Below are positions 345 to 64,000 of a DNA stretch of 64,000 nt, one piece after another; position 1 is the first letter of the stretch, and each line of letters begins with the position of its first letter. Location of the stretch: positions 11,284,001 to 11,348,000 of the forward strand of contig NC_043018.1 in the NCBI RefSeq assembly GCF_006345805.1. The letters are read 5' to 3'. A program made the translations under genes and the position numbers. The stretch comes from Octopus sinensis. Lineage: Eukaryota. The notes under the pieces are model-generated. The model searched no databases. It was not told the origin of the DNA and saw nothing but the letters and a program-made list of their open reading frames with translations.

Positions 345-1577
345 TTGGGTTGGCAACTAAGTTCCCGCAGTTTTTTTTTAATTTAAATTTTTTTAAAAGG
401 TTTAATAAAAAATAACAACTAATTAATCAATAATGTATTCACCCTTGTTGTTTACAACTTCCTCCCAACGGTTGACAAGATTTTCAATACCTCGTTGGTA
501 GAAATCCCCCGATTTCGACTTGAAAAATTGATCCAACCAAGCTCTCAATTCTGCATCAGTATTGAATGAAACACCATGCATAGCATTTGAAAGAGATCGA
601 AAGAGGTGGAAATCCATTGGTGCCAAATCAGGAGAGTACGGCGAGTGTGGCAGCACTTCCCAGCCATGCGTTTGAATAGCATATTGGCAATGAGGGCAGG
701 CGTTGTCGTGCAGCAAAAGAACTCCATGTTGCCAGTTGGTTCTTTTCTCTTGAATAGCCGTGTTGAGTCGTTCCATCTGCTGAACATAGAGTTCCGCGTG
801 GACCGTTTGGTTCTGTTCAAGCAATTTGTAATGGATAATCCCTTCCCAGTCCCACCATACGCACAACATTGTTATACGCGGATGAAGATCTTATTTCACG
901 CACGATGTCGCTTGTTTACCGGGGCTCAGCCATTCCTTGCGCTGCTTCATATTGATGTTCAGGCACCATTTTTCATTGCCAGTAACGATTCAGTAAAGAA
1001 ATCGTTGAGTTGAGCGGTGACAAGCAAGCAGACCAGCAGAGATTGTGGCTTGTTGATTTTTGTTGTTATCACCTAAAGCATGCAGAACCCATGCTCCATA
1101 CTTCTAAACCTTTCCCATCGAGTGAAGATGCTTCTCTATAGCAGTGTGGGAGTATTCCATTTTCTCTGCCAGTTCCCTTGTTGTTTGTGCAAAAGTTGGT
1201 TTAATCGCTCTTCATTGAACTCAACTGGACAACCAGAACAAGGTGCATCTTTGAGGTCAAAATTTCCATTTTTGAACTTGGCATACCAATCATGAGCGGT
1301 TCTTTCAGCTATGGCACCCTCTCCATACACAGCACAAATGTCACAAGCAGTTTTTGCAGCCTTAGAACCTTGATTAAAAGCGAAAAGAAGGTGTCAAAAA
1401 TGCTCGTTCTTCTTAACTTGACATTCCATTTTAATGATCTGAAACTAAGCAAATATTAACTAAAATTAACTAGGAAAAAAAAACAAAATATATTCCAAAA
1501 TGATTCAAAAATAGAATTCTTGAAAAAAATAGATTCCAAAATTTAAAAAAACGGTGGGAACTTAGTTGCCAACCCAA
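345..1577 (-). mobile_element. Full-length, non-functional mariner (Tc1/mariner, D,D34D) DNA transposon
   Basis: 22-bp perfect terminal inverted repeat TTGGGTTGGCAACTAAGTTCCC at 345-366 and 1556-1577, each flanked by TA (343-344, 1578-1579). Length 1233 bp, with a transposase remnant inside. Confidence 0.97.
423..1429 (-). pseudogene. Mariner transposase pseudogene
   Basis: Minus strand starts MECQVKKNEHF*HL...VYGEGAIAERTAHDWYAKFKNGNFDLKD (N-terminal HTH region). Later motifs are RIVTGNEKWC (first catalytic D mutated to N), MLCVWWD, LLHDNA and YSPDLAPMDFHLF, ending NNKGEYIID*. It contains an early TGA and several frameshifts. Confidence 0.95.
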
Positions 1578-5117: not shown

Positions 5118-6587
5118 ATTATCATCATCATCGTTTAACGTCCATTTTCCATGCTCGCATGGGTTGGACGGTTCAACTGGGGTCTGGGAAGCCAGAAGGC
5201 TGCGCCATGCCCAGTCTGATCTGGCAGTGTTTCTACAGCTGGATGCCCTTCCTAATGCCAACCACTCCGAGAGTTTAGTGGTGCTTTTTATGTGCCACCT
5301 GCACAGGTACCAGACGAGGCTGGCAAACAGCCACAGTCGGATGGTGCTTTTTACGTGCCACCGGCACGGGGGCCAGGTGAGGCTGGCAACGGCCACAATC
5401 GGATGGTGCTTTTTACGTGCCACCGGCACTGGTATCACAGCTACAATTTCCATTGATGTTGATCAATTTCGATTTTGATTTTCACTTGCCTCAACAGGTC
5501 TTCACAAGTAGGGTTTGTGTCACAAGAAGGAAAGGTATGCATAAGTGGGATGGCTACGTCCCAGGTAGAGGCCACGGGTTATGGTCTCACTTGTCCTGCC
5601 GGGTCTTCCCATGCACAGCATACTTCCAAAGGTCTCGGTCTCTGGTCATTTCCTCAGTGAGACCTAAAGTTTGAAGGTTGTGCTTCACCACCTCATCCCA
5701 GGTTTTCCCGGGTCTACCTCTTCCACAGGTTCCCTCAACCGCTAGGGTGTGGCGCTTTTTCACACAACTATCTTCATCCATTCTTGTCACATGACTATAC
5801 CAGCGCAAATGTCTCTCTTGCACACCACAACTGATGCTTCTTAGGTCCAACTTTTCTCTCAAGGTACTTACACTCTGTTGAGTATGAACACTGACATTAC
5901 ACATCCATCAGAGCATACTGGCTTCATTTCTTGCAAGCTTACGCATATCCTCAGCAGTCACGGCCCAAGTTTCACTACCATGTAGCATGGCTGTTCATAC
6001 ACATGCGTCATACAGTCTGCCTTTTACTCTGAGTGAGAGGCCTTTTGTCACCAGCAGAGGTAAGAGCTCTCTGAACTTTGCCCTGGCTATTCTTACTCCA
6101 TCAGTTACACTTTCAGCACACCCGCCCCCCCTCACTGACTTGGTCACCTAGGTAATGGAAGCTATCAACTATTTCTAGTTTTTCTCCCTGGAATGTGGCA
6201 GAAGTTGGTCTCTGAGCATTTTCAGTGTTTATTGCTCCTGAGCATCTGCCACATACAAAAACTATCTTCCCAGTTAGCCTTCCTTTGACATTGCTGCACC
6301 TCTTATGTGTCCATAGCTTACACTTGGTGCATCTTAAAGAATTTCTACCTATGCCTTTTCTACAGATCGAGCAGGGCCATCTACCTGAAGGCGTTTGTGA
6401 TTTGCCTGCCTTCCTACGTATTAGGACTTTGGTTTTAGCTAGGTTGATTTTAAGGCCCTTCGATTCTAATCCTTGTCTCCACACTTGAAACTTTGCCTCT
6501 AGTTCTGATAGTGACTCAGCAATTAGGAGCAAGGTCATCAGCATATAGGAGCTCCCAGGGGCATCCTGTCTTGAATTCCTCTGTTAT
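5118..6587 (-). mobile_element. 5'-truncated RTE-clade LINE: RT C-terminal half, 3' UTR and (GAT)n tail; frameshifted
   Basis: Minus strand reads ITEEFKTGCPWELLYADDL (frameshift after DDL), then GLKINLAKTKVL, EKLEIVDSFHYLGD and LRWYSHVTRMDEDSC...GTCGRGRPGKTWDEVV (typical RTE C-terminus). The UTR has short internal repeats and ends in (GAT)n at ~5120-5132. Confidence 0.93.
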
Positions 6588-24835: not shown

Positions 24836-25490
24836 TAAGGCGGCAAGGTGGCAGAATTATAAGCATGCCAGGTAAAATACTGAGTTCAAATTCTGCCAAA
24901 GTCACCTTTGTCTTTCATTCTTTCAGGGTTGATAAAATGAGTACCAGTTGAGTAATGGGGTCAATGTAACTGAATTACCTCCTCCCCTGAAATTGCTGGC
25001 CTTGTGCCAAAATTTGAAATCATTATTATTATTATTATTATTATTGTGGTGATGAGCGAGTAGAATTGTTAGCATGCCAGGCGAAATGCTTAGCGGCATT
25101 TTGTCTGCTGCTATGTTCTGAGTTCAAATTCTGCTGAGGTCAACTTTGCCTTTCATCATTTCAGGGTTGATAAATTGAGTACCAGTTGATGTAATCAAGT
25201 GCCCCACCCCAAATGTCAGGCCTTGTGCTTATAGTAGAAAAGATTATTATTATTATTATTATTATCATTGTGGTGAGCTAGCAGAATCAGTAGCACACCA
25301 AACAAAATTCTTAGTGACTTTTCTTGTGCCTTGGCATTATGAGTTCAAATTCCACCAAGGTCAACTTTAATTTTCTTCCCTTCAGGAGTCAATAAAATAA
25401 AAACCAGTCAAACACAGGGGTTGATTTAATTGACTATTTCCCAACCCCCAAATTTCAGGCCTTGTACCGGTAATAGAAAGGATTAATTTC
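24836..25490 (+). mobile_element. Three head-to-tail family-A SINEs joined by (ATT)n
   Basis: Heads at ~24836, ~25046 and ~25268. Each ends ...GGCCTTGTG...AGAAAGG/TTTGAAAT followed by ATTATTATT, directly before the next head. Confidence 0.88.
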
Positions 25491-25589: not shown

Positions 25590-27011
25590 TTGACCTTGGC
25601 AGGATGAAAGGCAAAGCTGATGACAACAGTATTTGAACTCAAAAACATAAATGGCTACAACTAAATACTGCAAGGTATTTTGTCTGATGCTCAAGTGATC
25701 AATCTGTCAAGTTTTATCTCTTTATAATAATAATATTAACATAATAATGATAATAGCAAAAATAATAATAGATATTAAGATGAGTGTGATACAATTTGTA
25801 ATAAACGTAGACAAACCCTGTCTAATTAATTCAATAAACAGTCAAATTGTATTTATTACAAATCCTATTGTGCTCATCTTATTGCTTATTTACCTTCTTG
25901 AAGCATTACATCAATATTCATAAATTAATAATAATAATAATAATAATAATAGAAATAATAATAATGACAATAATAATTTTGGCCCAAGGCCAGCAGTTTC
26001 AGAGTGGGGGAGTGGATAAATCGATTACATCAATCACCCCCTCCAGTATTGAACTGGTGCTTATTTTATCAACCCAGAAAGGATGGAAGGCAAAGTTGAC
26101 CTTATCAGAATTTGAACTCAGAATGTAAAGATGGATAAAATGCTATCGAGCATTTTGTCTGATACAGTAATGACTCTGTCATCCTTTGTACTCTAGGCAT
26201 TAGTCCTGAAATTTGGTGGGAAGGGGTTAGTTGATTACATTGACACCAGTACTCGATTGGTACTTTATTTTATCTACCCCAAAAGGATGAAAGGTGAAAT
26301 TGACCTCGGCAGCATTTGATCTCAAAACAAAGAGTTGAAGAAATGCTGCTAAGCATATTGTTCAACGCTCGAATGATTCTGCAACAGTTCTTCACCTCTG
26401 ATAATAATTCTTTCTAATATTGACACTAGGCCAGCAATTTTGAGGGGATGCAGCATGTTGATTACATTGATCTTTGAAGTTGACTGGGAGCTAATTTTAA
26501 TCAACCCTGAAAGGAAGAAAGGCAAAGTTGACCTTGGCAGGGTTTTTAGAAGAAACACCAATAAACATTTTGTCCAAAATGCCAACAATTCTACCAGCTG
26601 GCCACCTTAAAAGTAATAGTTCTTTCTTCTATTGGTAAAAGGTCAGCAATTTGATGGAGAGTGGAACCAGTCAATTACAATGCTCCCCACACACACACTT
26701 CCCCCCCAGTGTTTAACTGGTGTTAACATTTTATCAATGCTGAATAGATGAAGAGCAAAGTTGATCTCTGTGGAATTTGAACCTAGACTATAAAGCCAGA
26801 AGAAATACCCTTTTACTTGTTTCAGTCATTTGACTGTGGCCATGCTGGAGCACTGCCTTTTTTAGTCGAGCAAATCAACCCCAGGACTTATTCTTTGTAA
26901 GCCTAGTACTTATTCTATCGGTCTCTTTCGCCAAACCGCTAAGCTACAGGGACATAAACACACCAGCATTGGTTGTCAAGTGATGTTGGGGGGACAAACA
27001 CAGATACACAA

Positions 27012-28804: not shown

Positions 28805-29040
28805 TGTGGCAAGCTGGCAGGATCTTTAGAGCAGTGGTCCTAATGCTAAGTAATATTTCTTCTAACTTAAGCACGTTCTGAGTTTAAATTTCATTTGGGT
28901 GAACTTTGTTTTCATCCCTCTGGGGTTGATAAAGAAAAGTATCTGTCAAGTACTGGGATTAATAGTATCAATTAACCCCCTTCCCTCAGAATTGCTGGCC
29001 TTGTGCCAAAATTTGAAGTCATCAGTATTATTATTAATAT
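28805..29040 (+). mobile_element. Decayed family-A SINE immediately upstream of the array
   Basis: GTGGCAAGCTGGCAGGATC head through tail GCTGGCCTTGTGCCAAAATTTGAA, then an ATT-rich spacer leading into array unit 1. Confidence 0.8.
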
Positions 29041-29050
29041 TTTTATTACT

Positions 29051-32000
29051 AAGGCAGCAAGTGGGCAGAATTGTTAACATGCCAGGCAAAATGCTTAGAA
29101 GCATTTCGTCCATCTTTATGTTCTAAGTTCAAATTCTACCAAGGCAGCAAGCTGGCAGAATTGTTAACATGCCAGGCAAAATGCTTAGAAGCATTTCGTC
29201 CATCTTTATGTTCTAAGTTCAAATTCTACCAAGGCAGCAAGCTGGCAGAATTGTTAACATGCCAGGCAAAATGCTTAGAAGCATTTCGTCCATCTTTATG
29301 TTCTAAGTTCAAATTCTACCAAGCAGCAAGCTGGCAGAATTGTTAACATGCCAGGCAAAATGCTTAGAAGCATTTCGTCCATCTTTATGTTCTAAGTTCA
29401 AATTCTACCAAGGCAGCAAGCTGGCAGAATCGTTAACATGCCAGGCAAAATGCTTAGAAGCATTTCGTCCATCTTTATGTTCTAAGTTCAAATTCTACCA
29501 AGGCAGCAAGCTGGCAGAATCGTTAACATGCCAGGCAAAATGCTTAGAAGCATTTCGTCCATCTTTATGTTCTAAGTTCAAATTCTACCAAGGCAGCAAG
29601 CTGGCAGAATCGTTAACATGCCAGGCAAAATGCTTAGAAGCATTTCGTCCATCTTTGTTCTAAGTTCAAATTCTACCAAGGCAGCAAGCTGGCAGAATCG
29701 TTAACATGCCAGGCAAAATGCTTAGAAGCATTTCGTCCATCTTTATGTTCTAAGTTCAAATTCTACCAAGGCAGCAAGCTGGCAGAATTGTTAACATGTC
29801 AGGCAAAATGCTTAGAAGCATTTCGTCCATCTTTATGTTCTAAGTTCAAATTCTACCAAGGCAGCAAGCTGGCAGAATTGTTAACATGCCAGGCAAAATG
29901 CTTAGAAGCATTTCGTCCATCTTTATGTTCTAAGTTCAAATTCTACCAAGGCAGCAAGCTGGCAGAATCGTTAACATGCCAGGCAAAATGCTTAGAAGCA
30001 TTTCGTCCATCTTTATGTTCTAAGTTCAAATTCTACCAAGGCAGCAAGCTGGCAGAATTGTTAACATGCCAGGCAAAATGCTTAGAAGCATTTCGTCCAT
30101 CTTTATGTTCTGAGTTCAAATTCTACCAAGGCAGCAAGCTGGCAGAATTGTTAACATGCCAGGCAAAATGCTTAGAAGCATTTCGTCCATCTTTGTTCTA
30201 AGTTCAAATTCTACAAGGCAGCAAGCTGGCAGAATTGTTAACATGCCAGGCAAAATGCTTAGAAGCATTTCGTCCATCTTTATGTTCTAAGTTCAAATTC
30301 TACCAAGGCAGCAAGCTGGCAGAATCGTTAACATGCCAGGCAAAATGCTTAGAAGCATTTCGTCCATCTTTATGTTCTAAGTTCAAATTCTACCAAGGCA
30401 GCAAGCTGGCAGAATTGTTAACATGCCAGGCAAAATGCTTAGAAGCATTTCGTCCATCTTTATGTTCTAAGTTCAAATTCTACCAAGGCAGCAAGCTGGC
30501 AGAATCGTTAACATGCCAGGCAAAATGCTTAGAAGCATTTCGTCCATCTTTATGTTCTAAGTTCAAATTCTACCAAGGCAGCAACCTGGCAGAATCGTTA
30601 ACATGCCAAGCAAAATGCTTAGAAGCATTTCGTCCATCTTTATGTTCTAAGTTCAAATTCTACCAAGGCAGCAAGCTGGCAGAATTGTTAACATGCCAGG
30701 CAAAATGCTTAGAAGCATTTCGTCCATCTTTATGTTCTAAGTTCAAATTCTACCAAGGCAGCAAGCTGGCAGAATCGTTAACATGCCAGGCAAAATGCTT
30801 AGAAGCATTTCGTCCATCTTTATGTTCTAAGTTCAAATTCTACCAAGGCAGCAAGCTGGCAGAATCGTTAACATGCCAGGCAAAATGCTTAGAAGCATTT
30901 CGTCCATCTTTATGTTCTAAGTTCAAATTCTACCAAGGCAGCAACCTGGCAGAATTGTTAACATGCCAAGCAAAATGCTTAGAAGCATTTCGTCCATCTT
31001 TATGTTCTAAGTTCAAATTCTACCAAGGCAGCAAGCTGGCAGAATGTTAACATGCCAGGCAAAATGCTTAGAAGCATTTCGTCCATCTTTATGTTCTAAG
31101 TTCAAATTCTACCAAGGCAGCAAGCTGGCAGAATCGTTAACATGCCAGGCAAAATGCTTAGAAGCATTTCGTCCATCTTTATGTTCTAAGTTCAAATTCT
31201 ACCAAGGCAGCAAGCTGGCAGAATCGTTAACATGCCAGGCAAAATGCTTAGAAGCATTTCGTCCATCTTTATGTTCTAAGTTCAAATTCTACCAAGGCAG
31301 CAAGCTGGCAGAATCGTTAACATGCCAGGCAAAATGCTTAGAAGCATTTCGTCCATCTTTATGTTCTAAGTTCAAATTCTACCAAGGCAGCAAGCTGGCA
31401 GAATCGTTAACATGCCAGGCAAAATGCTTAGAAGCATTTCGTCCATCTTTATGTTCTAAGTTCAAATTCTACCAAGGCAGCAAGCTGGCAGAATTGTTAA
31501 CATGCCAAGCAAAATGCTTAGAAGCATTTCGTCCATCTTATGTTCTAAGTTCAAATTCTACCAAGGCAGCAAGCTGGCAGAATTGTTAACATGCCAGGCA
31601 AAATGCTTAGAAGCATTTCGTCCATCTTTATGTTCTAAGTTCAAATTCTACCAAGGCAGCAAGCTGGCAGAATTGTTAACATGCCAGGCAAAATGCTTAG
31701 AAGCATTTCGTCCATCTTTATGTTCTAAGTTCAAATTCTACCAAGGCAGCAAGCTGGCAGAATCGTTAACATGCCAGGCAAAATGCTTAGAAGCATTTCG
31801 TCCATCTTTATGTTCTAAGTTCAAATTCTACCAAGGCAGCAAGCTGGCAGAATCGTTAACATGCCAGGCAAAATGCTTAGAAGCATTTCGTCCATCTTTA
31901 TGTTCTAAGTTCAAATTCTACCAAGGCAGCAACCTGGCAGAATTGTTAACATGCCAAGCAAAATGCTTAGAAGCATTTCGTCCATCTTTATGTTCTAAGT

Positions 32001-35000
32001 TCAAATTCTACCAAGGCAGCAAGCTGGCAGAATCGTTAACATGCCAGGCAAAATGCTTAGAAGCATTTCGTCCATCTTTATGTTCTAAGTTCATTCAATT
32101 CTACCAAGGCAGCAACCTGGCAGAATTGTTAACATGCCAAGCAAAATGCTTAGAAGCATTTCGTCCATCTTTATGTTCTAAGTTCAAATTCTACCAAGGC
32201 AGCAAGCTGGCAGAATTGTTAACATGCCAGGCAAAATGCTTAGAAGCATTTCGTCCATCTTTATGTTCTAAGTTCAAATTCTACCAAGGCAGCAAGCTGG
32301 CAGAATCGTTAACATGCCAGGCAAAATGCTTAGAAGCATTTCGTCCATCTTTATGTTCTAAGTTCAAATTCTACCAAGGCAGCAAGCTGGCAGAATCGTT
32401 AACATGCCAGGCAAAATGCTTAGAAGCATTTCGTCCATCTTTATGTTCTAAGTTCAAATTCTACCAAGGCAGCAAGCTGGCAGAATTGTTAACATGCCAG
32501 GCAAAATGCTTAGAAGCATTTCGTCCATCTTTATGTTCTAAGTTCAAATTCTACCAAGGCAGCAACCTGGCAGAATTGTTAACATGCCAAGCAAAATGCT
32601 TAGAAGCATTTCGTCCATCTTTATGTTCTAAGTTCAAATTCTACCAAGGCAGCAAGCTGGCAGAATTGTTAACATGCCAGGCAAAATGCTTAGAAGCATT
32701 TCGTCCATCTTTATGTTCTAAGTTCAAATTCTACCAAGGCAGCAAGCTGGCAGAATTGTTAACATGCCAGGCAAAATGCTTAGAAGCATTTCGTCCATCT
32801 TTATGTTCTAAGTTCAAATTCTACCAAGGCAGCAAGCTGGCAGAATTGTTAACATGCCAGGCAAAATGCTTAGAAGCATTTCGTCCATCTTTATGTTCTA
32901 AGTTCAAATTCTACCAAGGCAGCAAGCTGGCAGAATTGTTAACATGCCAGGCAAAATGCTTAGAAGCATTTCGTCCATCTTTATGTTCTAAGTTCAAATT
33001 CTACCAAGGCAGCAAGCTGGCAGAATCGTTAACATGCCAGGCAAAATGCTTAGAAGCATTTCGTCCATCTTTATGTTCTAAGTTCAAATTCTACCAAGGC
33101 AGCAAGCTGGCAGAATTGTTAACATGCCAGGCAAAATGCTTAGAAGCATTTCGTCCATCTTTATGTTCTAAGTTCAAATTCTACCAAGGCAGCAAGCTGG
33201 CAGAATTGTTAACATGCCAGGCAAAATGCTTAGAAGCATTTCGTCCATCTTTATGTTCTAAGTTCAAATTCTACCAAGGCAGCAAGCTGGCAGAATTGTT
33301 AACATGCCAGGCAAAATGCTTAGAAGCATTTCGTCCATCTTTATGTTCTGAGTTCAAATTCTACCAAGGCAGCAAGCTGGCAGAATTGTTAACATGCCAG
33401 GCAAAATGCTTAGAAGCATTTCGTCCATCTTTATGTTCTAAGTTCAAATTCTACCAAGGCAGCAAGCTGGCAGAATTGTTAACATGCCAGGCAAAATGCT
33501 TAGAAGCATTTCGTCCATCTTTATGTTCTAAGTTCAAATTCTACCAAGGCAGCAAGCTGGCAGAATCGTTAACATGCCAGGCAAAATGCTTAGAAGCATT
33601 TCGTCCATCTTTATGTTCTAAGTTCAAATTCTACCAAGGCAGCAAGCTGGCAGATTGTTAACATGCCAGGCAAAATGCTTAGAAGCATTTCGTCCATCTT
33701 ATGTTCTAAGTTCTAATTCAAATCTACCAAGGCAGCAAGCTGGCAGAATCGTTAACATGCCAGGCAAAATGCTTAGAAGCATTTCGTCCATCTTTATGTT
33801 CTAAGTTCAAATTCTACCAAGGCAGCAAGCTGGCAGAATTGTTAACATGCCAGGCAAAATGCTTAGAAGCATTTCGTCCATCTTTATGTTCTAAGTTCAA
33901 ATTCTACCAAGGCAGCAACCTGGCAGAATTGTTAACATGCCAGGCAAAATGCTTAGAAGCATTTCGTCCATCTTTATGTTCTAAGTTCAAATTCTACCAA
34001 GGCAGCAAGCTGGCAGAATCGTTAACATGCCAGGCAAAATGCTTAGAAGCATTTCGTCCATCTTTATGTTCTAAGTTCAAATTCTACCAAGGCAGCAAGC
34101 TGGCAGAATTGTTAACATGCCAGGCAAAATGCTTAGAAGCATTTCGTCCATCTTTATGTTCTAAGTTCAAATTCTACCAAGGCAGCAAGCTGGCAGAATC
34201 GTTAACATGCCAGGCAAAATGCTTAGAAGCATTTCGTCCATCTTTATGTTCTAAGTTCAAATTCTACCAAGGCAGCAAGCTGGCAGAATTGTTAACATGC
34301 CAGGCAAAATGCTTAGAAGCATTTCGTCCATCTTTATGTTCTAAGTTCAAATTCTACCAAGGCAGCAAGCTGGCAGAATCGTTAACATGCCAGGCAAAAT
34401 GCTTAGAAGCATTTCGTCCATCTTTATGTTCTAAGTTCAAATTCTACCAAGGCAGCAAGCTGGCAGAATTGTTAACATGCCAGGCAAAATGCTTAGAAGC
34501 ATTTCGTCCATCTTTATGTTCTAAGTTCAAATTCTACACCAGGCAGCAACCTGGCAGAATTGTTAACATGCCAGGCAAAATGCTTAGAAGCATTTCGTCC
34601 ATCTTTATGTTCTAAGTTCAAATTCTACCAAGGCAGCAAGCTGGCAGAATTGTTAACATGCCAGGCAAAATGCTTAGAAGCATTTCGTCCATCTTTATGT
34701 TCTAAGTTCAAATTCTACCAAGGCAGCAACTGGCAGAATTGTTAACATGCCAGGCAAAATGCTTAGAAGCATTTCGTCCATCTTTATGTTCTAAGTTCAA
34801 ATTCTACCAAGGCAGCAAGCTGGCAGAATCGTTAACATGCCAGGCAAAATGCTTAGAAGCATTTCGTCCATCTTTATGTTCTAAGTTCAAATTCTACCAA
34901 GGCAGCAAGCTGGCAGAATCGTTAACATGCCAGGCAAAATGCTTAGAAGCATTTCGTCCATCTTTATGTTCTAAGTTCAAATTCTACCAAGGCAGCAAGC

Positions 35001-38000
35001 TGGCAGAATCGTTAACATGCCAGGCAAAATGCTTAGAAGCATTTCGTCCATCTTTATGTTCTAAGTTCAAATTCTACCAAGGCAGCAAGCTGGCAGAATC
35101 GTTAACATGCCAGGCAAAATGCTTAGAAGCATTTCGTCCATCTTTATGTTCTAAGTTCAAATTCTACCAAGGCAGCAAGCTGGCAGAATCGTTAACATGC
35201 CAGGCAAAATGCTTAGAAGCATTTCGTCCATCTTTATGTTCTAAGTTCAAATTCTACCAAGGCAGCAAGCTGGCAGAATTGTTAACTTGCCAGGCAAAAT
35301 GCTTAGAAGCATTTCGTCCATCTTTATGTTCTAAGTTCAAATTCTACCAAGGCAGCAAGCTGGCAGAATCGTTAACATGCCAGGCAAAATGCTTAGAAGC
35401 ATTTCGTCCATCTTATGTTCTAAGTTCAAATTCTACCAAGGCAGCAAGCTGGCAGAATCGTTAACATGCCAGGCAAAATGCTTAGAAGCATTTCGTCCAT
35501 CTTTATGTTCTAAGTTCAAATTCTACCAAGGCAGCAAGCTGGCAGAATTGTTAACATGCCAGGCAAAATGCTTAGAAGCATTTCGTCCATCTTTATGTTC
35601 TAAGTTCAAATTCTACCAAGGCAGCAAGCTGGCAGAATCGTTAACATGCCAGGCAAAATGCTTAGAAGCATTTCGTCCATCTTTATGTTCTAAGTTCAAA
35701 TTCTACCAAGGCAGCAAGCTGGCAGAATCGTTAACATGCCAAGCAAAATGCTTAGAAGCATTTCGTCCATCTTTATGTTCTAAGTTCAAATTCTACCAAG
35801 GCAGCAAGCTGGCAGAATCGTTAACATGCCAAGCAAAATGCTTAGAAGCATTTCGTCCATCTTTATGTTCTAAGTTCAAATTCTACCAAGGCAGCAAGCT
35901 GGCAGAATCGTTAACATGCCAGGCAAAATGCTTAGAAGCATTTCGTCCATCTTTTGTTCTAAGTTCAAATTCTACCAAGGCAGCAAGCTGGCAGAATGTT
36001 AACATGCCAGGCAAAATGCTTAGAAGCATTTCGTCCATCTTTATGTTCTAAGTTCAAATTCTACCAAGGCAGCAAGCTGGCAGAATCGTTAACATGCCAG
36101 GCAAAATGCTTAGAAGCATTTCGTCCATCTTTATGTTCTAAGTTCAAATTCTACCAAGGCAGCAAGCTGGCAGAATCGTTAACATGCCAAGCAAAATGCT
36201 TAGAAGCATTTCGTCCATCTTTATGTTCTAAGTTCAAATTCTACCAAGGCAGCAAGCTGGCAGAATCGTTAACATGCCAAGCAAAATGCTTAGAAGCATT
36301 TCGTCCATCTTTATGTTCTAAGTTCAAATTCTACCAAGGCAGCAAGCTGGCAGAATCGTTAACATGCCAGGCAAAATGCTTAGAAGCATTTCGTCCATCT
36401 TTATGTTCTAAGTTCAAATTCTACCAAGGCAGCAAGGGCAGAATCGTTAACATGCCAGGCAAAATGCTTAGAAGCATTTCGTCCATCTTTATGTTCTAAG
36501 TTCAAATTCTACCAAGGCAGCAAGCTGGCAGAATTGTTAACATGCCAAGCAAAATGCTTAGAAGCATTTCGTCCATCTTTATGTTCTAAGTTCAAATTCT
36601 ACCAAGGCAGCAAGCTGGCAGAATCGTTAACATGCCAGGCAAAATGCTTAGAAGCATTTCGTCCATCTTTATTTCTAAGTTCAAATTCTACCAAGGCAGC
36701 AAGCTGGCAGAATCGTTAACATGCCAGGCAAAATGCTTAGAAGCATTTCGTCCATCTTTATGTTCTAAGTTCAAATTCTACCAAGGCAGCAAGCTGGCAG
36801 AATCGTTAACATGCCAGGCAAAATGCTTAGAAGCATTTCGTCCATCTTTATGTTCTAAGTTCAAATTCTACCAAGGCAGCAACCTGGCAGAATCGTTAAC
36901 ATGCCAGGCAAAATGCTTAGAAGCATTTCGTCCATCTTTATGTTCTAAGTTCAAATTCTACCAAGGCAGCAAGCTGGCAGAATTGTTAACATGCCAGGCA
37001 AAATGCTTAGAAGCATTTCGTCCATCTTTATGTTCTAAGTTCAAATTCTACCAAGGCAGCAAGCTGGCAGAATCGTTAACATGCCAGGCAAAATGCTTAG
37101 AAGCATTCGTCCATCTTTATGTTCTAAGTTCAAATTCTACCAAGGCAGCAAGCTGGCAGAATCGTTAACATGCCAGGCAAAATGCTTAGAAGCATTTCGT
37201 CCATCTTTATGTTCTAAGTTCAAATTCTACCAAGGCAGCAAGCTGGCAGAATTGTTAACATGCCAGGCAAAATGCTTAGAAGCATTTCGTCCATCTTTAT
37301 GTTCTAAGTTCAAATTCTACCAAGGCAGCAAGCTGGCAGAATCGTTAACATGCCAGGCAAAATGCTTAGAAGCATTTCGTCCATCTTTATGTTCTAAGTT
37401 CAAATCTACCAAGGCAGCAAGCTGGCAGAATTGTTAACATGCCAGGCAAAATGCTTAGAAGTTTCGTCCATCTTTATGTTCTAAGTTCAAATTCTACCAA
37501 GGCAGCAAGCTGGCAGAATTGTTAACATGCCAGGCAAAATGCTTAGAAGCATTTCGTCCATCTTTATGTTCTAAGTTCAAATTCTACCAAGGCAGCAAGC
37601 TGGCAGAATTGTTAACATGCCAGGCAAAATGCTTAGAAGCATTTCGTCCATCTTTATGTTCTAAGTTCAAATTCTACCAAGCAGCAAGCTGGCAGAATCG
37701 TTACATGCCAGGCAAAATGCTTAGAGCATTTCGTCCATCTTTATGTTCTAAGTTCAAATTCTACCAAGGCAGCAAGCTGGCAGAATCGTTAACATGCCAG
37801 GCAAAATGCTTAGAAGCATTTCGTCCATCTTTATGTTCTAAGTTCAAATTCTACCAAGGCAGCAAGCTGGCAGAATCGTTAACATGCCAGGCAAAATGCT
37901 TAGAAGCATTTCGTCCATCTTTATGTTCTAAGTTCAAATTCTACCAGGCAGCAAGCTGGCAGAATCGTTAACATGCCAGGCAAAATGCTTAGAAGCATTT

Positions 38001-39827
38001 CGTCCATCTTTATGTTCTAAGTTCAAATTCTACCAAGGCAGCAAGCTGGCAGAATCGTTAACATGCCAGGCAAAAGCTGCTTAGAAGCATTTCGTCCATC
38101 TTTATGTTCTAATTCAAATTCTACCAAGGCAGCAAGCTGGCAGAATTGTTAACATGCCAGGCAAAATGCTTAGAAGCATTTCGTCCATCTTTATGTTCTA
38201 AGTTCAAATTCTACCAAGGCAGCAAGCTGGCAGAATTGTTAACATGCCAGGCAAAATGCTTAGAAGCATTTCGTCCATCTTTATGTTCTAAGTTCAAATT
38301 CTACCAAGGCAGCAAGCTGGCAGAATTGTTAACATGCCAGGCAAAATGCTTAGAAGCATTCGTCCTCTTATGTTCTAAGTTCTAAGTTCAAATTCTACCA
38401 AGGCAGCAAGCTGGCAGAATTGTTAACATGCCAGGCAAAATGCTTAGAAGCATTTCGTCCATCTTTATGTTCTAAGTTCAAATTTTACCAAGGCAGCAAG
38501 CTGGCAGAATCGTTAACATGCCAGGCAAAATGCTTAGAAGCATTTCGTCCATCTTTATGTTCTAAGTTCAAATTCTACCAAGGCAGCAAGCTGGCAGAAT
38601 CGTTAACATGCCAGGCAAAATGCTTAGAAGCATTTCGTCCATCTTTATGTTCTAAGTTCAAATTCTACCAAGGCAGCAAGCTGGCAGAATCGTTAACATG
38701 CCAGGCAAAATGCTTAGAAGCATTTCGTCCATCTTTATGTTCTAAGTTCAAATTCTACCAAGGCAGCAAGCTGGCATCGTTAACATGCCAGGCAAAATGC
38801 TTAGAAGCATTTCGTCCATCTTTATGTTCTAAGTTCAAATTCTACCAAGGCAGCAAGCTGGCAGAATCGTTAACATGCCAGCAAAATGCTTAGAAGCATT
38901 TCGTCCATCTTTATGTTCTAAGTTCAAATTCTACCAAGGCAGCAAGCTGGCAGAATCGTTAACATGCCAGGCAAAATGCTTAGAAGCATTCGTCCATCTT
39001 TATGTTCTAAGTTCAAATTCTACCAAGGCAGCAAGCTGGCAGAATCGTTAACATGCCAGGCAAAATGCTTAGAAGCATTTCGTCCATCTTATGTTCTAAG
39101 TTCAAATTCTACCAAGGCAGCAAGCTGGCAGAATCGTTAACAGCCAGCAAAATGCTTAGAAGCATTTCGTCCATCTTTATGTTCTAAGTTCAAATTCTAC
39201 CAAGGCAGCAAGCTGGCAGAATCGTTAACATGCCAGGCAAAATGCTTAGAAGCATTTCGTCCATCTTTATGTTCTAAGTTCAAATTCTACCACGGGCAGC
39301 ACTGGCAGAATCGTTAACATGCCAGGCAAAATGCTTAGAAGCATTTCGTCCATCTTTATGTTCTAAGTTCAAATTCTACCAAGGCAGCAAGCTGGCAGAA
39401 TCGTTACATGCCAGGCAAAATGCTTAGAAGCATTTCGTCCATCTTTAGTTCTAAGTTCAAATTCTACCAAGGCAGCAAGCTGGCAGAATCGTTAACATGC
39501 CAGGCAAAATGCTTAGAAGCATTTCGTCATCTTTATGTTCTAAGTTCAAATTCTACCAAGGCAGCAAGCTGGCAGAATCGTTAACATGCCAGGCAAAATG
39601 CTTAGAAGCATTTCGTCCATCTTTATGTTCTAAGTTCAAATTCTACCAAGGCAGCAAGCTGGCAGAATCATTAACATGCCAGGCAAAATGCTTAGAAGCA
39701 TTTCGTCCATCTTTATGTTCTAAGTTCAAATTCTACCAAGGCAGCAAGCTGGCAGAATCGTTAACATGCCAGGCAAAATGCTTAGAAGCATTTCGTCCAT
39801 CTTTATGTTCTAAGTTCAAATTCTACC
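29051..39827 (+). repeat. ~120 x 90-bp tandem array (satellite) built from the tRNA-like head of SINE family A
   Basis: Unit AAGGCAGCAAGCTGGCAGAAT(C/T)GTTAACATGCCAGGCAAAATGCTTAGAAGCATTTCGTCCATCTTTATGTTCTAAGTTCAAATTCTACC repeats without spacers; 10777 bp / 90 = 119.7. It matches the heads of dispersed SINEs, e.g. at 40057 and 49437. Confidence 0.99.
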
Positions 39828-40270
39828 AAGGCAGCAAGCTGGCAGAATCATTAACATGCCAAGCAAAATGCTTAGAAGCATTTCGTCTGTCGCTACATTC
39901 TCAGTTCAAATTCTGCCATGGTCAACTTTGCCTTTCATCCTTTTGGAGTCAATAAATTAAGTACCAGTGAAATACTGGGGTCCATGTAATTGACTATTCC
40001 CCTCCCCTGAAATTTCAGGCCTTGTGCCTTTGGTAGAAAGGATTATTATTCTTATTAAGGCAGCAAGCTGGCAGAATCGTTAACATGCTAGATGAGATGT
40101 TTTCTCTTGTTTATGTTCTGAGTTCAAATTCCGCCATGGTTGACTTTGCTTTTCATCCTTTCAGGGTTGATAAAATAAGTACCAGTTGCGTACTGGGGTC
40201 GATATAATCGACTCTCCCCCTCCCCCAAATTTCAGGCCTTGTGCTTATAATAGAAAGGATTATTATTATT
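39828..40270 (+). mobile_element. Two complete family-A SINEs closing the array (39828-40048, 40057-40270)
   Basis: The final head continues into GGTCAACTTTGCCTTTCATCCTTTTGGAGTCAATAAATTAAGTACCAG...GGCCTTGTGCC..GTAGAAAGG-ATTATT. A second full copy follows. Confidence 0.92.
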
Positions 40271-41137
40271 ACTCCTAATTTTCCTTGTGAAGTATACCAG
40301 TAATTTCTCTTCATTTCATCCCCATACATCAATCATCTGCATGTGGTACTCTTTCCATTGTCCAGACTATTTCTGCCTTCTATTGTTGTTGTTGTTGACT
40401 ATTTCTTCTCTACAAATGCTGTTCTTCTCCCTTCTTTTGCTCTTCTTTGCCCCTCTGCTCTTACCAATATTTCCAACACTGTCATCCTCATCATCAAATA
40501 TCATATACACATTGGTATGAACCACCAACACCTCCACTACCACCGCTAACCACCATGCAGTAGTTGCCGTCACCACCACCATCAAGCCAATGTTGTTATA
40601 ACTCTCAGCATCACCATCATCCAATATCTATCACTACCATCATTCTATAGAAAAATCCTCTATCCATCATTGCCAGCATCACCATCCACCACCACCACCA
40701 CCACACATCATGGTCACTACTGCACCATCAAGCATTTGCCACTGCCACCACCACCACCACCACCACCACCATTAGTTTTTATCCGCAGCCCTCCTCCTCT
40801 TTCTCATCAATATGTAGTGATGTTGGCCCATTGTCAGCTACAATCATTGACTTTGGCCAAACTACTCGGACTTGATGGCTAATAATGATCTGATTGTCTA
40901 CTTTCGTTGTTCTTTCCACTTCTTGTTTTGTTTTTGGTTTTTTCACTTTTCTTTATTTGGCTTCTTCCTCCACCTCCACCCCATCCATCCATCATTCACC
41001 TATTCATTCATTCATTCATTCATTCATTCGTTCATTTGTAGATTGACTGACTGATTGATTGATTCACTCATTCATTGATCCTTTTGGTCATTCATCTGCT
41101 TTGTTTGTATGACCAGAACACAGTCAGAGAATCTAAT

Positions 41138-42820: not shown

Positions 42821-43013
42821 CAACTCACCCCTATTCAAGCTCACTCCTAACTCAAGTCCACCCCTAACTAAAGCCTACCCCAACTCAAGCCCCCACCCCA
42901 ACTCAAGCTCACTTCTAACTCAAGCCCACCCTGAACACAAACACACCTTCAACTTAAGCCTACCCCCAAATCCAGCTCGCCTCCCAACTCAGTCTCATCC
43001 CCAACTCAACTCT
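42821..43013. repeat. Degenerate 17-bp C-rich minisatellite (CAAGCCCACCCCTAACT-like, ~11 copies)
   Basis: Successive units CAAGCTCACTCCTAACT, CAAGTCCACCCCTAACT, CAAGCCCCACCCCAACT, CAAGCTCACTTCTAACT and so on. Confidence 0.75.
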
Positions 43014-48764: not shown

Positions 48765-50655
48765 AGGTAGTGGATTGACATGATTGTTAGAAGTTTTGAA
48801 AATGCCTTGCAGCATTTATTTTGATTCTCTACATTCTGTGTTCAAATCCTGCTGAGGCTAACTTTGCCTTTCATCTTTACAGGGTGGATAAAATAAAATA
48901 CCTGTTAAGTACTGGGTTGATAAGCCATCCCCCTCAAAATTACAGACCTTATGCTTTAAATTAGAAGCCATTGTTATCATAATTCTTCAAGCCAAAAAAG
49001 AAAAAAAAAAATGGTAAGAGACTTAGGAGTCGGCCCGGAACAAGATGATCGGATAATATTCATAGACTCAGTTGGTCATGCTTGGGAATCCGTCCAAAAA
49101 ATTTAATGATGGTTTCTTCTGATAAGACCCTGTGAAGGAGATGCCTGAGCCTTCTACTTCAACAACCCAGTAATAGGGGGCCAGAAAATGGATGGATTAT
49201 TATCATTTATCATTATTTTAATTTTTATTAAGGCAGCGAGCTGACAGAAATATTAGCATGCTGGGCAAAATGCTTAGTATCATTTTGTCCTTCTTCACGT
49301 TCTGAGTTCAAATTCCATCAGGGTTGATAAAATAAGTGTCAGTTACATACTGGGTCGATGTAATCAACTAACCCCGCTCCCCCAAAATTTCAGGCCTTGT
49401 GCCTTTAGTAGAAAGGATTATTATTATTATCATTATTAAGGTAGTCAGCTGGAAGAAATGTTAGCATGCCAAGCAAAATGCTTAGTGGTACTTCGTCCAT
49501 CTTCATATTCAGAGTTTTTAAATTCCACCGGGGTCAACTTTGCCTTTCATCCTTTCGGGATTGATAAAATAAGTACCAGTTGAGTACTGCGGTCAATGTG
49601 ATCAACTTGCCCTGTCCCTTGAACTTGCTGGCTTTGTGCCAAAATTTGAAATCATTATTATTATTATTATTATTTAAAGATAATCAATGGATGGGATAGT
49701 CTTGTTTTAAATAAAGTACTTTGTGATGTTTAGTTAGGTTGCTTTACCAAGTTCAGATCCTGTAGAAATGAACTTAGCTTTTCTTCCTTCCAGAGGTTTA
49801 TAAGGTAAGTACCAGTTAACCACCAGGGTCAGAATAATCAACTACACCCATTCTTCAACTATAAGCCTTGTGTCAAATTTTTTGATTTTTCTCACTTTTC
49901 CATCCCGGCATGGGTCGATTGTGACTTTTTGTCTCTTGAAGTAGTGGTTTATAACTGGATTCTTTTCCTGAACCCAACTCTTTTAGTTGCCCCTTACAAC
50001 ATGCAGGGGTACAATGTGTCAGTCATAAAAATTGGCAGACACATGGCATAGAAACTATTATTAATCAGAATTGTTCCGCTATTCGTACAAAATACCTTGT
50101 GTTATTTCATTATGGATGTTTTGATTTTAAATCTCACTCAATGTCAACTCTAAGTGACATTCTTTTAGGTATTTTTGATTAGAAAGAAAATACCAGTTAA
50201 GTTGACGGTCTTGACTCATCCCGTCACCTTGGAATTTGCTGGTCTTGAGCCTAAATTAAAGACTATTGAGTTTAAATACTGCTGATATTAACTTTGCCTT
50301 TTATCCTTTTGGGATTTGATAAAATGAGTAGCAATCGACTCCCTGTGGTTGATATAATTGATTTTCCCTTTCCCTCAAATCCAGGCCCTGTACCTACAGC
50401 AGAAAGAATTATTATTATTATTATATGAGGTGGTGAGCTGACAGAATTGTTAGCACATCAGACAAAAGACTTAGTGTGGCATTTCTTCTAACTCTTTATG
50501 TTCTAAGTTCAAATTCCACTGAGGTCGACTTCACCTTTCATCCTTTCCAGGTCGATAAAATAAGTACCATCTGAACACTGGGGTTGATGTAATCAACTAA
50601 CCCTGCCTTCCCCTAAAATTGCTGGCAGCTTTGTTCCCAAATTTGAAACCATTAT
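48765..50655 (+). mobile_element. Plus-strand cluster of about seven family-A SINE copies or fragments linked by (ATT)n
   Basis: Heads or cores at ~48765, 49230, 49437, 49740, 50270 and 50428, with ATT runs at 49410-49436, 49652-49674 and 50408-50424. Confidence 0.8.
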
Positions 50656-59684: not shown

Positions 59685-60904
59685 TTATCTACCCGTACAA
59701 GCTAACCAAGTGATGTACATACATATGTGTGTTTGTAGGTGTTATATGTGTGTATATATGTGTATATGCACTGTCTGTGTGTATATGTTTATATAATAGC
59801 AATGTTTTGTGCGTGTTTGTATATATTAATCAAGAGCATTGACATTACCATTTCAGGAGGACTTTTATAATTTCCCCTCAGGTCTGACACATTTCCACAA
59901 ATTAAGGCTATCACCTGCCTTAATAGTAATACTAATAATAATAATAATAATCCTTTCTACTATAGGCACAAGGCCTGGATTTTTGTGGGAAGGGGGAATA
60001 ATTGATCACATCAACACCAATACTTGACTGGTACTTAACTAATTGACCCCAAAAGAATGAAGGGCAAAGACGACCTTGGTGAAATTTGAATTCAGAATAT
60101 AAAGGGCCAGAACAGATGCCACAAAGCAATTTGTCTTGCACTCTAATGATTCACTCAGCTTGAGGGGATGAAACTAGACTTGTTGGTTTTTGTCCACCTC
60201 CAGCAGTTGATTGGTCCTTTATTTCATTGACCTCAGAGAGAGGCACAAGGCCCGAATTTGTGGGAAGAGGGTTAATCAAATTGATCCAGTACTTGGCTGG
60301 TACTTACTTTTATCAACCCCAGAAAAATAAATACCAACTTGACATTTTGGCAGAATTTGAATTCAGAATATTAGAGGCCATAGTGAAATATTGCAAAACA
60401 CTTCATCAGAGATTCTAACAATTCTGCAAATAATCATAGTAATAATAATAATGATAATAATAATAATCCTTTCTACTATAGGCACAAGGCCTGAAATTTT
60501 AGGCAGGAAAGGACTAGTCAATTACATCAACTCCAGTGTATAACTGGTACTTATTTCATCGACCCCAAAAGGATGAAAGGTAAAGCTGACCTTGATGGAA
60601 TTTGAATTTAGAGCATAAGGACAGACCAAATGCTAACGTTTCAGCCAGTTCACCACCTTAATAATAATAATATTAATAATAATAATATTAATGATGATGA
60701 TGATTTTAGCACAAGGCCAGCAATTTTTAAGGAGTGGGGTTGTCAGTTACAGCAACACCAGTGCGCAACTGGTACTTAGTTTATCAACCACAAAAAATGA
60801 AAAGCAAAGCTGACTTCAGCTGAATTTGAACTCAAGAGTTTAGGGAATTAGAAGAAATGTTTCTAATGATTTGATCCAACAACTTAACAATTCTGCCAGT
60901 AACA

Positions 60905-61545
60905 ATCATCATCATCATCATCGTTTAATGTCTGTTCTCCATGCTAGCATGGGTTGGACGGTTCGACCAGGATCTGGGAAGCCAGATGGCTGCACCAGGC
61001 TCCAGTCTGATCTGGCAGTGTTTCTACAGCTAGATGCCCTTCCTAACACCAACCACTCTGTGAGTGTAGTGGGTGCTTTTTACATGCCACCAGCACAGGT
61101 GCCAGGCGAGGCTGGCAACGGCCACGATCGGATTGGTGCTTTTTACGTGCTACCAGCACAGAAGCCAGTCAAGGCAGCGCTGGCATTGGCCACGTTTGGA
61201 TGGTGCTTTTTACGTGCCACCGGCACAGGGATCACAACTACAATTTCCATTGATTTTTGATGTTGGTGTACTTGACTCAATGGATCTCCTCAAGTACAGG
61301 GTCGAAACGGTGTTTCTTTACTTGCCACCTGCACAGGAGTCAGTCCAGCGGCCCTGGCAACTGCTGGGTGCCAGTCATAGGATTGGTTCAATTTCGATTC
61401 TGATTTCACTTGCCCCAACAGGTCTTCACAAGCAGAGTTTATTGTCCAATGAAGGGAGGTTGGCATGGGTGCCAGTCGTCGGATGTGGTTCGATTTTGAA
61501 TTCAATTTCAACTTCGCTTGCCTCAACAGGTCTTCACATGTCCAA
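60905..61545 (-). mobile_element. RTE LINE 3' UTR copy with a partial internal duplication
   Basis: 60908-61260 is nearly colinear with 5120-5460. The segment CACTTGCC.CAACAGGTCTTCACA occurs twice (~61405, ~61512). Confidence 0.85.
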
Positions 61546-62387: not shown

Positions 62388-63099
62388 AAGGTTTGGTTGA
62401 TTCCATTGATGTTAGTGTATGACTGAGACTGTATTTTATTGATCCCAAAAGGATGGGAGGCAAAGTTGACTTTAGCAGGATTTGAACTCGGAACATAAAA
62501 TGCCAAAGCAAATACTGTAGAGTATTTTTTTATGACACTCTCATGGTTTTGCCAGCTCACTGCCATAATAGTAATAATCTTAGTTTAATTAACTTCATTA
62601 CATCAAATCAAGTGAACAAATTTAAGGGGTACAATGTAGTAGTTCAATTTAAATAGTAACTGACTTCTGCTTATTTTAATGACCCCTGAATGCTACTACT
62701 ATTACTACTACTACTGGTAATAATAATAATGGTTTCAAAATTTGGCATAAGGCTAGTAATTGGGGGGTGGGCATGCAACTTAGTCAATTACATCACCCCA
62801 GTATTTGATGGGTACTTTATTTTATTGACCCCGAAAAGTTGAAAGGCAATAATAATAATAATAATCCTTCCTACAACAGGCATAAGGCCTGAAATTTTGG
62901 GGAGGGGACTAATTGATTACATCGACCCCAGTGTATCACTGGTACTTAATTTATTGACCCCGAACAGATGAAAGTCAAAGTCACCCCCTCCCCTCCAGAA
63001 TTTGAACTCAGAATGTAAAGAGTCTGAAGAAATAAATTCCACAAAGCATTTTAACTGACGTGTTACGATTCTGCCAGTTTAATAATAATGATAATAATA

Positions 63100-63625
63100 A
63101 GGCCAGCTCAGGATTCAACTGGTACTTATTTTATTGACCCTGAAATGAGGAATGGCAAAGTCAACCTTGGCGGAATTTGAACTCAGAACATGAAGTCAGA
63201 CAAAATACCTATTTCTTTACTACCCACAAGGGGCTAAACACAGAGAGGACAAACAAGGACAGACAGATGGATTAAGTCGATTACATCGACTCCAGTGCAT
63301 AACTGGTACTTATTTAGTCGACCCCGAAAGGATGAAAAGCAAAGTCAACCATGGCGGAATTTGAACTCAGAACATGAAGTCAGACAAAATACCTATTTCT
63401 TTACTACCCACAAGGGGCTAAACACAGAGAGGACAAACAAGGACAGACAGATGGATTAAGTCGATTACATCGACTCCAGTGCATAACTGGTACTTATTTA
63501 GTCGACCCCGAAAGGATGAAAAGCAAAGTCAACCATGGCGGAATTTGAACTCAGAACATGAAGTCAGACATAATACCGCTAAGCATTTCACCTGGCGTGC
63601 TAACAATTCTACAGGCTTGCCACGT
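63100..63625 (-). repeat. 184-bp tandem multimer of family-A SINE lacking the A-box in repeated units
   Basis: GGCGGAATTTGAACTCAGAACATGAAGTCAGACA starts at 63169, 63353 and 63537 (period 184). Only the outermost unit keeps the full head. Confidence 0.93.
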
Positions 63626-64000
63626 TAATACTAATACTTATAATAATAATAATGATTTCCATTATTAGGACCCAACTCAATGTCAAGGGACAAAATACAA
63701 TACGCAAAACATGGGGGCTTGGCTGAATCAAAAGGGAATCAACAACAATAAGGATAAAGCAAGAGATATAAAAATACAATGATAATTCCATAAACTAGCA
63801 TCACCATTTTTAATTGTTATGTAATGTTATGACGTATAGTTAAATATCACCACATAACAGAGATATTGAAGTATTCAATGTGTTACGTCATATATAACCA
63901 TATACACACTTGATATGTCTGGAGGTGTGAATATGTCTGTGTAGTAGCAGAGAGGGAGAGAGAGAGAGAGAGAGAGAGGAGAGACTGATAATCACAATGA

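Follow-up and report, generated by a model that had tools for sequence, protein, structure and literature searches.

A stretch of 64,000 nucleotides from Octopus sinensis (contig NC_043018.1, positions 11,284,001 to 11,348,000; hereafter the window, in whose own numbering all positions are given) contains a tandem array of about 120 units of 90 bp, each of which corresponds to the head of a short interspersed element (SINE), the 5' part that carries an A-box-like and a B-box-like motif. The array is a SINE-derived satellite, made by multiplication in place of the head of a single SINE copy, which is a described route to satellite DNA. We consider it likely that the array was founded where it now stands across a four-nucleotide AAGG microhomology, that it then grew by unequal exchange, and that it did so without a selected function. 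The original prediction for this locus had proposed a dense platform for RNA polymerase III (Pol III) with its factor TFIIIC, and its account did not include the anatomy of the parent SINE. The array and its immediate surroundings are laid out as follows.

About 28806 to 29050, plus strand: upstream SINE, S0, with an AT-rich (ATT)n-type tail (BLAST of the full SINE against the window, alignment and reading of the sequence).
29051 to 29142, plus strand: left edge of the array, the AA of the SINE 5' start AAGG followed by unit 1 (alignment).
29053 to 39829, plus strand: about 120 consensus-type 90-bp units, each equivalent to SINE head positions 1 to 92, with the final GG common to the next unit.
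Unit positions 11 to 21, in each consensus-type unit: A-box-like motif TGGCAGAAT(C/T)G.
Unit positions 37 to 54, in each consensus-type unit: inverted repeat AAATGCT/AGCATTT.
Unit positions 74 to 84, in each consensus-type unit: B-box-like motif AGTTCAAATTC.
35952 to 35955, plus strand: first sense-strand run of four T (T4) in the array, in a variant unit.
38483 to 38486, plus strand: second sense-strand T4 in the array, in a variant unit with a C to T change in TTCTACC.
39830 to 39921, plus strand: terminal unit, which doubles as the head of a full-length SINE (S2) and shows 88% identity with the unit consensus.
39922 to 40056, plus strand: S2 body and (ATT)n-type tail, unbroken from the terminal unit (alignment).
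40057 to 40272, plus strand: SINE S3, head-to-tail with S2 (BLAST, alignment).

Tandem Repeats Finder (TRF), applied to the window, reports a single tandem array at 29047-39918 with a period of 90, 121.1 copies, 97% matches, 1% indels and a score of 20662. Segmentation of the array yields about 121 units, and 89 of the 119 start-to-start intervals are exactly 90 bp. The 28-nucleotide motif that spans the junction from one unit to the next (TTCAAATTCTACCAAGGCAGCAAGCTGG) occurs 109 times, every time within the array, with none expected in shuffled sequence. Together with the TRF result this bears out the array of about 10.8 kb and 120 units that had been predicted. The HpaI site GTTAAC, which was said to occur once per unit, is present 117 times inside the array, in good agreement with that claim. 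Other counts within the array are 116 for the B-box-like AGTTCAAATTC, 115 for AAATGCTTAGAAGCATTT, 65 for the A-box-like TGGCAGAATCG and 48 for its variant TGGCAGAATTG.

Dispersed through the window are more than 30 copies of the parent SINE, which is about 215 bp long; its conserved body (…CTTTGCCTTTCATCCTTTCAGGGTTGATAAAATAAGTACCAGT…) lies between the head and an (ATT)n tail. The 90-bp unit aligns to positions 1-92 of this SINE, from the 5' start (AAGGCAGCAAGCTGG…) to 8 nucleotides beyond the B-box-like motif, and its 3' limit coincides with the start of the SINE body. The earlier description of the unit as exactly the SINE 5' module is therefore correct for its boundaries but not for its sequence, which is 66-80% identical to the other SINE heads in the window (about 30) and 88% identical to the adjoining head. 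Three changes, A25, A47 and A73, are specific to the array and none of them falls in a box core; the A at position 25, a rare base, makes the HpaI site.

The sequence at which units meet bears on how the first of them may have been joined. At about positions 87-93 the SINE copies have CC(R)AGG-T, and after the previous tail those of the window begin with AAGG-C; each array junction reads …TTCTACCAAGG|CAGCAAGC…. Given the AAGG start of the SINE and the family sequence at positions 87-93, the junction CCAAGG|CAGC lies on a 4-nucleotide AAGG microhomology. We infer a founding event in which position ~92 of a SINE head (...TTCYRCCAAGG) would have been joined to position 1 of a head (AAGGCAGCAAGC...) across the common AAGG, giving a product with the structure head, then head-body-tail. 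The 90-bp direct repeat so formed would have expanded to about 121 copies via unequal sister-chromatid exchange or replication slippage, and the same processes would hold the interior of the array homogeneous by concerted evolution. Both box-like motifs of the units would be an inheritance from the SINE that does not require the array to have a function. The array would most likely be selectively neutral repetitive DNA, with TFIIIC binding or weak transcription possible as a by-product.

The two edges of the array differ from its interior in a telling way. On the left, the array begins immediately past the tail of S0, and the sole departures of unit 1 from the consensus, at positions 10, 11 and 20, are on its outer (5') side. 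On the right, the last unit runs unbroken into the body and tail of S2, which makes it the head of a full-length SINE. This terminal unit differs from the consensus at 2 of 56 sites in positions 1-56 vs 9 of 36 in positions 57-92 (Fisher p = 0.003). Both edge units are thus homogenised on the side that faces the array and original on the side of the unique flank, and such one-sided homogenisation is what unequal exchange or conversion, if repeated, predicts. Over its 3' part the unit is near the family consensus (3 differences), and the terminal S2 head is not, so that the founders were probably two different heads rather than a duplicate of the S2 head. Two heads could have come together through microhomology-mediated rearrangement of neighbouring SINEs, or through a reverse-transcriptase template switch from the 5' end of one RNA to about position 92 of another. 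Beyond S2, the first 30 nucleotides of S3 past its AA lead-in are those of the array unit, including the rare A25 and its HpaI site, while the remainder is ~77% identical and has an 11-nucleotide deletion; the array may have converted S3 locally, or the two may have a source subfamily in common.

Within the array, substitutions amount to ~1% per site and the pairwise divergence of interior units is ~1.3%, flat for separations of 1-40 units; the dispersed heads differ by 20-34%. Common variant sites are G9C (8 units), C20T (48-50 units, 42%) and G33A (13 units), and these three variable sites give 11 haplotypes in a mosaic that is not periodic. Shared variants are interspersed: 9C and 33A are linked at units 18, 22, 33, 35 and 40, 33A occurs in the unit pairs 75/76 and 80/81 (an offset of 5 units), and a 2-bp deletion is common to units 7 and 13. 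A higher-order repeat or a dimer period (180 bp) was ruled out, the autocorrelation being aperiodic. Another candidate read-out, CpG decay as an indicator of methylation, was likewise rejected. The array has a CpG observed/expected ratio of 0.43, against 0.31-0.33 for its flanks. The first CpG of the unit is C/T polymorphic in 42% of units and the second is intact in ~118 of 120, a pattern of variant spread rather than of general decay and uninformative on methylation.

The very low and flat divergence would also suit amplification in one burst by rolling-circle copying of an excised circle (extrachromosomal circular DNA) followed by reintegration, or spread of the array as a retrotransposed SINE with many heads. 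The unit boundary, which is the 5' end of the SINE RNA, is consistent with a template-switch origin of the first junction. However, identical units would be expected from a one-unit circle and a k-unit period from a circle of k units; the array shows neither, T20 being present in 42% of units without periodicity. In addition, the edge units are hybrid and continuous with resident SINE sequence, and there is no other head-to-head junction within the window. Taken together, an origin by either of these routes appears extremely improbable.

A different concern is the length of the array, which might have been inflated from a short SINE-head duplication by a long-read assembler. Length differences of 1-4 bp are found in 31 of the ~120 units, mostly in T/A runs, and are concentrated in the 3' third of the array (35800-39500, units ~77-116). 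The clustered small deletions resemble consensus errors of long reads, but real slippage mutations are the other possible source. A search for the junction with exact and degenerate patterns found no copy in metagenome and viral contigs, which would fit an artefact, but these collections are unlikely to contain the genome of this animal and absent matches in them say little. Inflation from identical reads is not expected to generate the non-periodic mosaic described above, with its 11 haplotypes at three sites and its linked 9C+33A, nor would simple inflation be expected to leave distinct and asymmetric edges. We therefore consider an assembly artefact very unlikely.

This raises the question as to whether the array does anything, and in particular whether its units could act as Pol III promoters. 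The A-box-like TGGCAGAATCG departs from TRGCNNAGTGG at 2 positions and fits the relaxed TRGYNNARNNG with 0 mismatches, and 48 units have a TTG variant. The B-box-like AGTTCAAATTC has 2 mismatches to GGTTCRANNCC and 3 to the strict GGTTCGANNCC, so that the single mismatch originally given for this box has to be corrected. The spacing between A and B is 52 bp, which is compatible with a type-2 promoter (~30-60 bp), and 74 of 20000 shuffled units equal the unit in box matches and spacing. Both motifs are retained, 50-54 bp apart, in 108 units. Of 21 SINE heads, 13 have an identical B motif, and no other part of the head is as well conserved (95% vs 73% elsewhere). That the units carry the A-box-like and B-box-like motifs of the SINE family was thus rightly recognised from the outset.

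The consensus unit has no sense-strand terminator of T4 or longer. As predicted, TTTT on the sense strand of the array is limited to the two variant units at 35952 and 38483, and the first T4 downstream of the array is at 39941, in the S2 body. The minus strand of the array has one T4 in each unit, and T3 runs in the array number 237, or ~2 per unit. If Pol III starts in a unit and stops only at T4, the predicted terminator-limited transcripts have a median length of ~2 kb and a maximum of 6.8 kb.

Folding and homology searches provide no sign of a tRNA. ARAGORN reports 0 tRNA genes, and no unit or SINE head has an Rfam tRNA match at the gathering score, at E ≤ 10 (39600-40300) or at E ≤ 1 (whole window); the sub-threshold Rfam matches are all microsatellite look-alikes of miRNA families. 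The minimum free energy (MFE) of the unit is -17.1 kcal/mol (z = -0.62), and 46 of 200 shuffled sequences fold at least as well. The 'tRNA-like RNA' envisaged for the array is not supported by these results. The 7-bp stem with its TAGA loop is present in the sequence as an inverted repeat but absent from the predicted MFE fold, in which GCTTAGAA pairs with TTCTAAGT and replaces the hairpin. A coding repeat was considered as well and ruled out: one of the six unit frames is open (frame +0), with open reading frames of up to 719 amino acids, but an open frame is also found in 60% of shuffled units and is expected by chance, and the peptide has no homologues among 5.8 billion protein clusters.

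Could the array nevertheless be a working Pol III/TFIIIC platform, either a boundary or chromatin organiser or a source of long read-through transcripts? The relaxed A-box match without mismatches, the family-wide B motif at a spacing that few shuffled units equal, the retention of both motifs in 108 units and the kilobase lengths allowed by the T4-only model would all be in line with this idea, and the spread of the SINE family would itself have needed transcription from such heads. There is also a precedent, as some amphibian tandem families with tRNA-like segments are transcribed in vitro (PMC10702118). Counted against a platform are the 2 mismatches of each box to its strict consensus (TRGCNNAGTGG and GGTTCRANNCC), including the position equivalent to C61, and the fact that the commonest polymorphism of all, C20T in 48-50 units, is located inside the A box, which argues that there is no constraint there. 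Moreover, most genomic SINE copies are silent, T3 runs would probably erode long Pol III read-through, and no tRNA-like fold was detected by ARAGORN, Rfam or folding. Finally, the satellites of O. bimaculoides carry somewhat more methylation than its transposons, which have almost none (PMC9476566), and this relative difference also speaks against an active platform. Judged from the sequence, a working platform of either kind is unlikely. The more specific proposal, that ~110-120 terminator-less type-2 heads are bound by TFIIIC, with or without Pol III, and form a boundary, a TFIIIC sink or the source of kilobase-long multimeric transcripts, seems to us quite unlikely as well. If it were true, the TFIIIC-occupied array would be a SINE-head 'ETC-like' super-cluster in a cephalopod. 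In either case, the head-only and terminator-less unit would make the array a convenient natural test object for the recruitment of TFIIIC by dense B-box arrays in an invertebrate. A function of the array's own has left no apparent sign in the sequence.

Several points weigh against an array that was founded across AAGG, expanded by unequal exchange and has no selected function. The C/T variants at position 20 are interspersed almost at random (46 runs vs 59 expected), which fits gene conversion or recurrent CpG mutation more easily than simple crossing-over. As founding events, microhomology-mediated duplication, deletion between adjacent SINEs and template switching are indistinguishable. 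The age of the array, its copy number and its state before expansion rest on one assembled locus. Absence of function is concluded from absence of evidence for one, and the boxes are the family's own motifs, both kept at the right spacing in 108 units, so that occupancy by TFIIIC or Pol III is possible. With these points included, founding in place followed by unequal exchange is still the explanation we favour.

The remainder of the window provides the setting for the array. It is AT-rich, with 35-42% G+C, and rich in microsatellites, and its other repeats include the following.

63117 to 63577, minus strand: another short tandem of SINE origin, with a 184-bp unit in 2.5 copies of 96% identity (TRF, BLAST).
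24880 to 25485; 26005 to 26794 (minus strand); 49230 to 50626; 59939 to 60834 (minus strand); 62422 to 63671 (minus strand): head-to-tail SINE clusters.
423 to 869, minus strand: mariner/Tc1-type transposase remnant (PF01359).
6113 to 6544, minus strand: remnant of a long interspersed element (LINE) with reverse transcriptase/PHD-finger similarity.

The tandem at 63117-63577 repeats the B-box-bearing 3' portion of a SINE head together with the body and another ~80 bp; SINE-internal tandem duplication thus recurs in the same genome. SINE copies are often clustered head-to-tail, each new one opening with AAGG right after the previous (ATT)n tail, which suggests insertion into tails or tail-mediated recombination. 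Another dispersed repeat family seems to be represented by a 62-63-bp internal tandem (x2.4; GGTGCTTTTTACGTGCCACC…) that is present at both 5279-5429 and 61072-61228. For the LINE remnant, every named relative is an Octopus bimaculoides protein, with 45-82% identity (closest 76-79%). The best contig to which the mariner remnant led lacks the SINE. At 17511-17608 on the plus strand there is a match to U6 small nuclear RNA that scores 55 bits, above the gathering score, and ends in T5; it has many substitutions relative to canonical U6 and is probably a pseudogene or retrocopy. We found no evidence for a chimera made by template switching between U6 and the SINE, the sequence downstream of the U6 pseudogene being unique in the window. 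Between 40000 and 46000 the plus strand is strongly pyrimidine-rich, with a GC skew down to -0.47 and an AT skew of -0.32, and C-rich degenerate repeats such as CACCCCTAACTCAAGCC occur within this region at 42826-42991.

The array was put forward as a candidate for an undescribed system, but SINE-derived satellites with an extended terminal unit have been described in squamates (PMC10702118) and one is known from a mollusc (PMC11121367); by itself, the array reveals no new mechanism. In squamates, such satellites (sSat) were found in 56 genomes by Vassetzky, Kosushkin and Ryskov in 2023; they are homogenised in long arrays, and the authors' route to them is duplication, amplification and concerted evolution (PMC10702118). 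Presence at several loci in one genome and a preference for subtelomeric positions are further marks of sSat. The octopus array has four of the features by which sSat are recognised, namely a unit that is homologous to a dispersed SINE, at least 4 units in tandem, a longer terminal unit and homogenisation. As in squamates, what is repeated is part of a tRNA-related SINE that also has dispersed copies in that genome, the longer terminal unit reaches the SINE terminus, and the long array is homogeneous; the short duplication at 63117-63577 resembles the squamate 'library of nuclei' stage (PMC10702118). The octopus array differs from those of squamates in its host, a cephalopod mollusc, and in its SINE family, which is unrelated to theirs. 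The octopus unit is a complete head with both boxes and no body, whereas the main snake unit joins the B box to a portion of the body. In geckos the units have added body or unknown sequence, and some squamate units take in the B box or the greater part of the head (PMC10702118).

Among molluscs, a close parallel is PcH-sat of the limpet Patella caerulea, whose monomer is likewise derived from part of a tRNA-related SINE, the Nin-SINE (PMC11121367). PcH-sat comes from the 3' region of that SINE and lacks boxes A and B, whereas the octopus unit is essentially the A-/B-box region; and PcH-sat is abundant and pericentromeric, whereas the octopus array is known from one 10.9-kb locus (PMC11121367). 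Bivalves have head-to-tail SINE multimers that resemble the whole-SINE clusters of our window and have been attributed to unequal recombination or repeated insertion; they consist of 2-15 complete SINEs, in contrast to the 121 copies of a head alone in the octopus array (PMC11481361). The amphibian families PolIII/TAN (Cynops), OAX or 'satellite I' (Xenopus) and Rana/polIII have a segment resembling a tRNA-type promoter in each unit, as here, but their units are 200-750 bp long with much non-tRNA sequence and their derivation from a SINE is unproven, whereas the SINE origin of the octopus array is direct (PMC10702118). In the literature searched we found no description of a SINE-derived satellite from a cephalopod, and a search of papers for printed sequence of the SINE gave nothing of relevance. 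The array would extend this class of satellites to cephalopods, and it would do so as a satellite that still lies beside its parent transposon, with the donor SINE, the microhomology of the founding junction and the un-homogenised edges all still readable.

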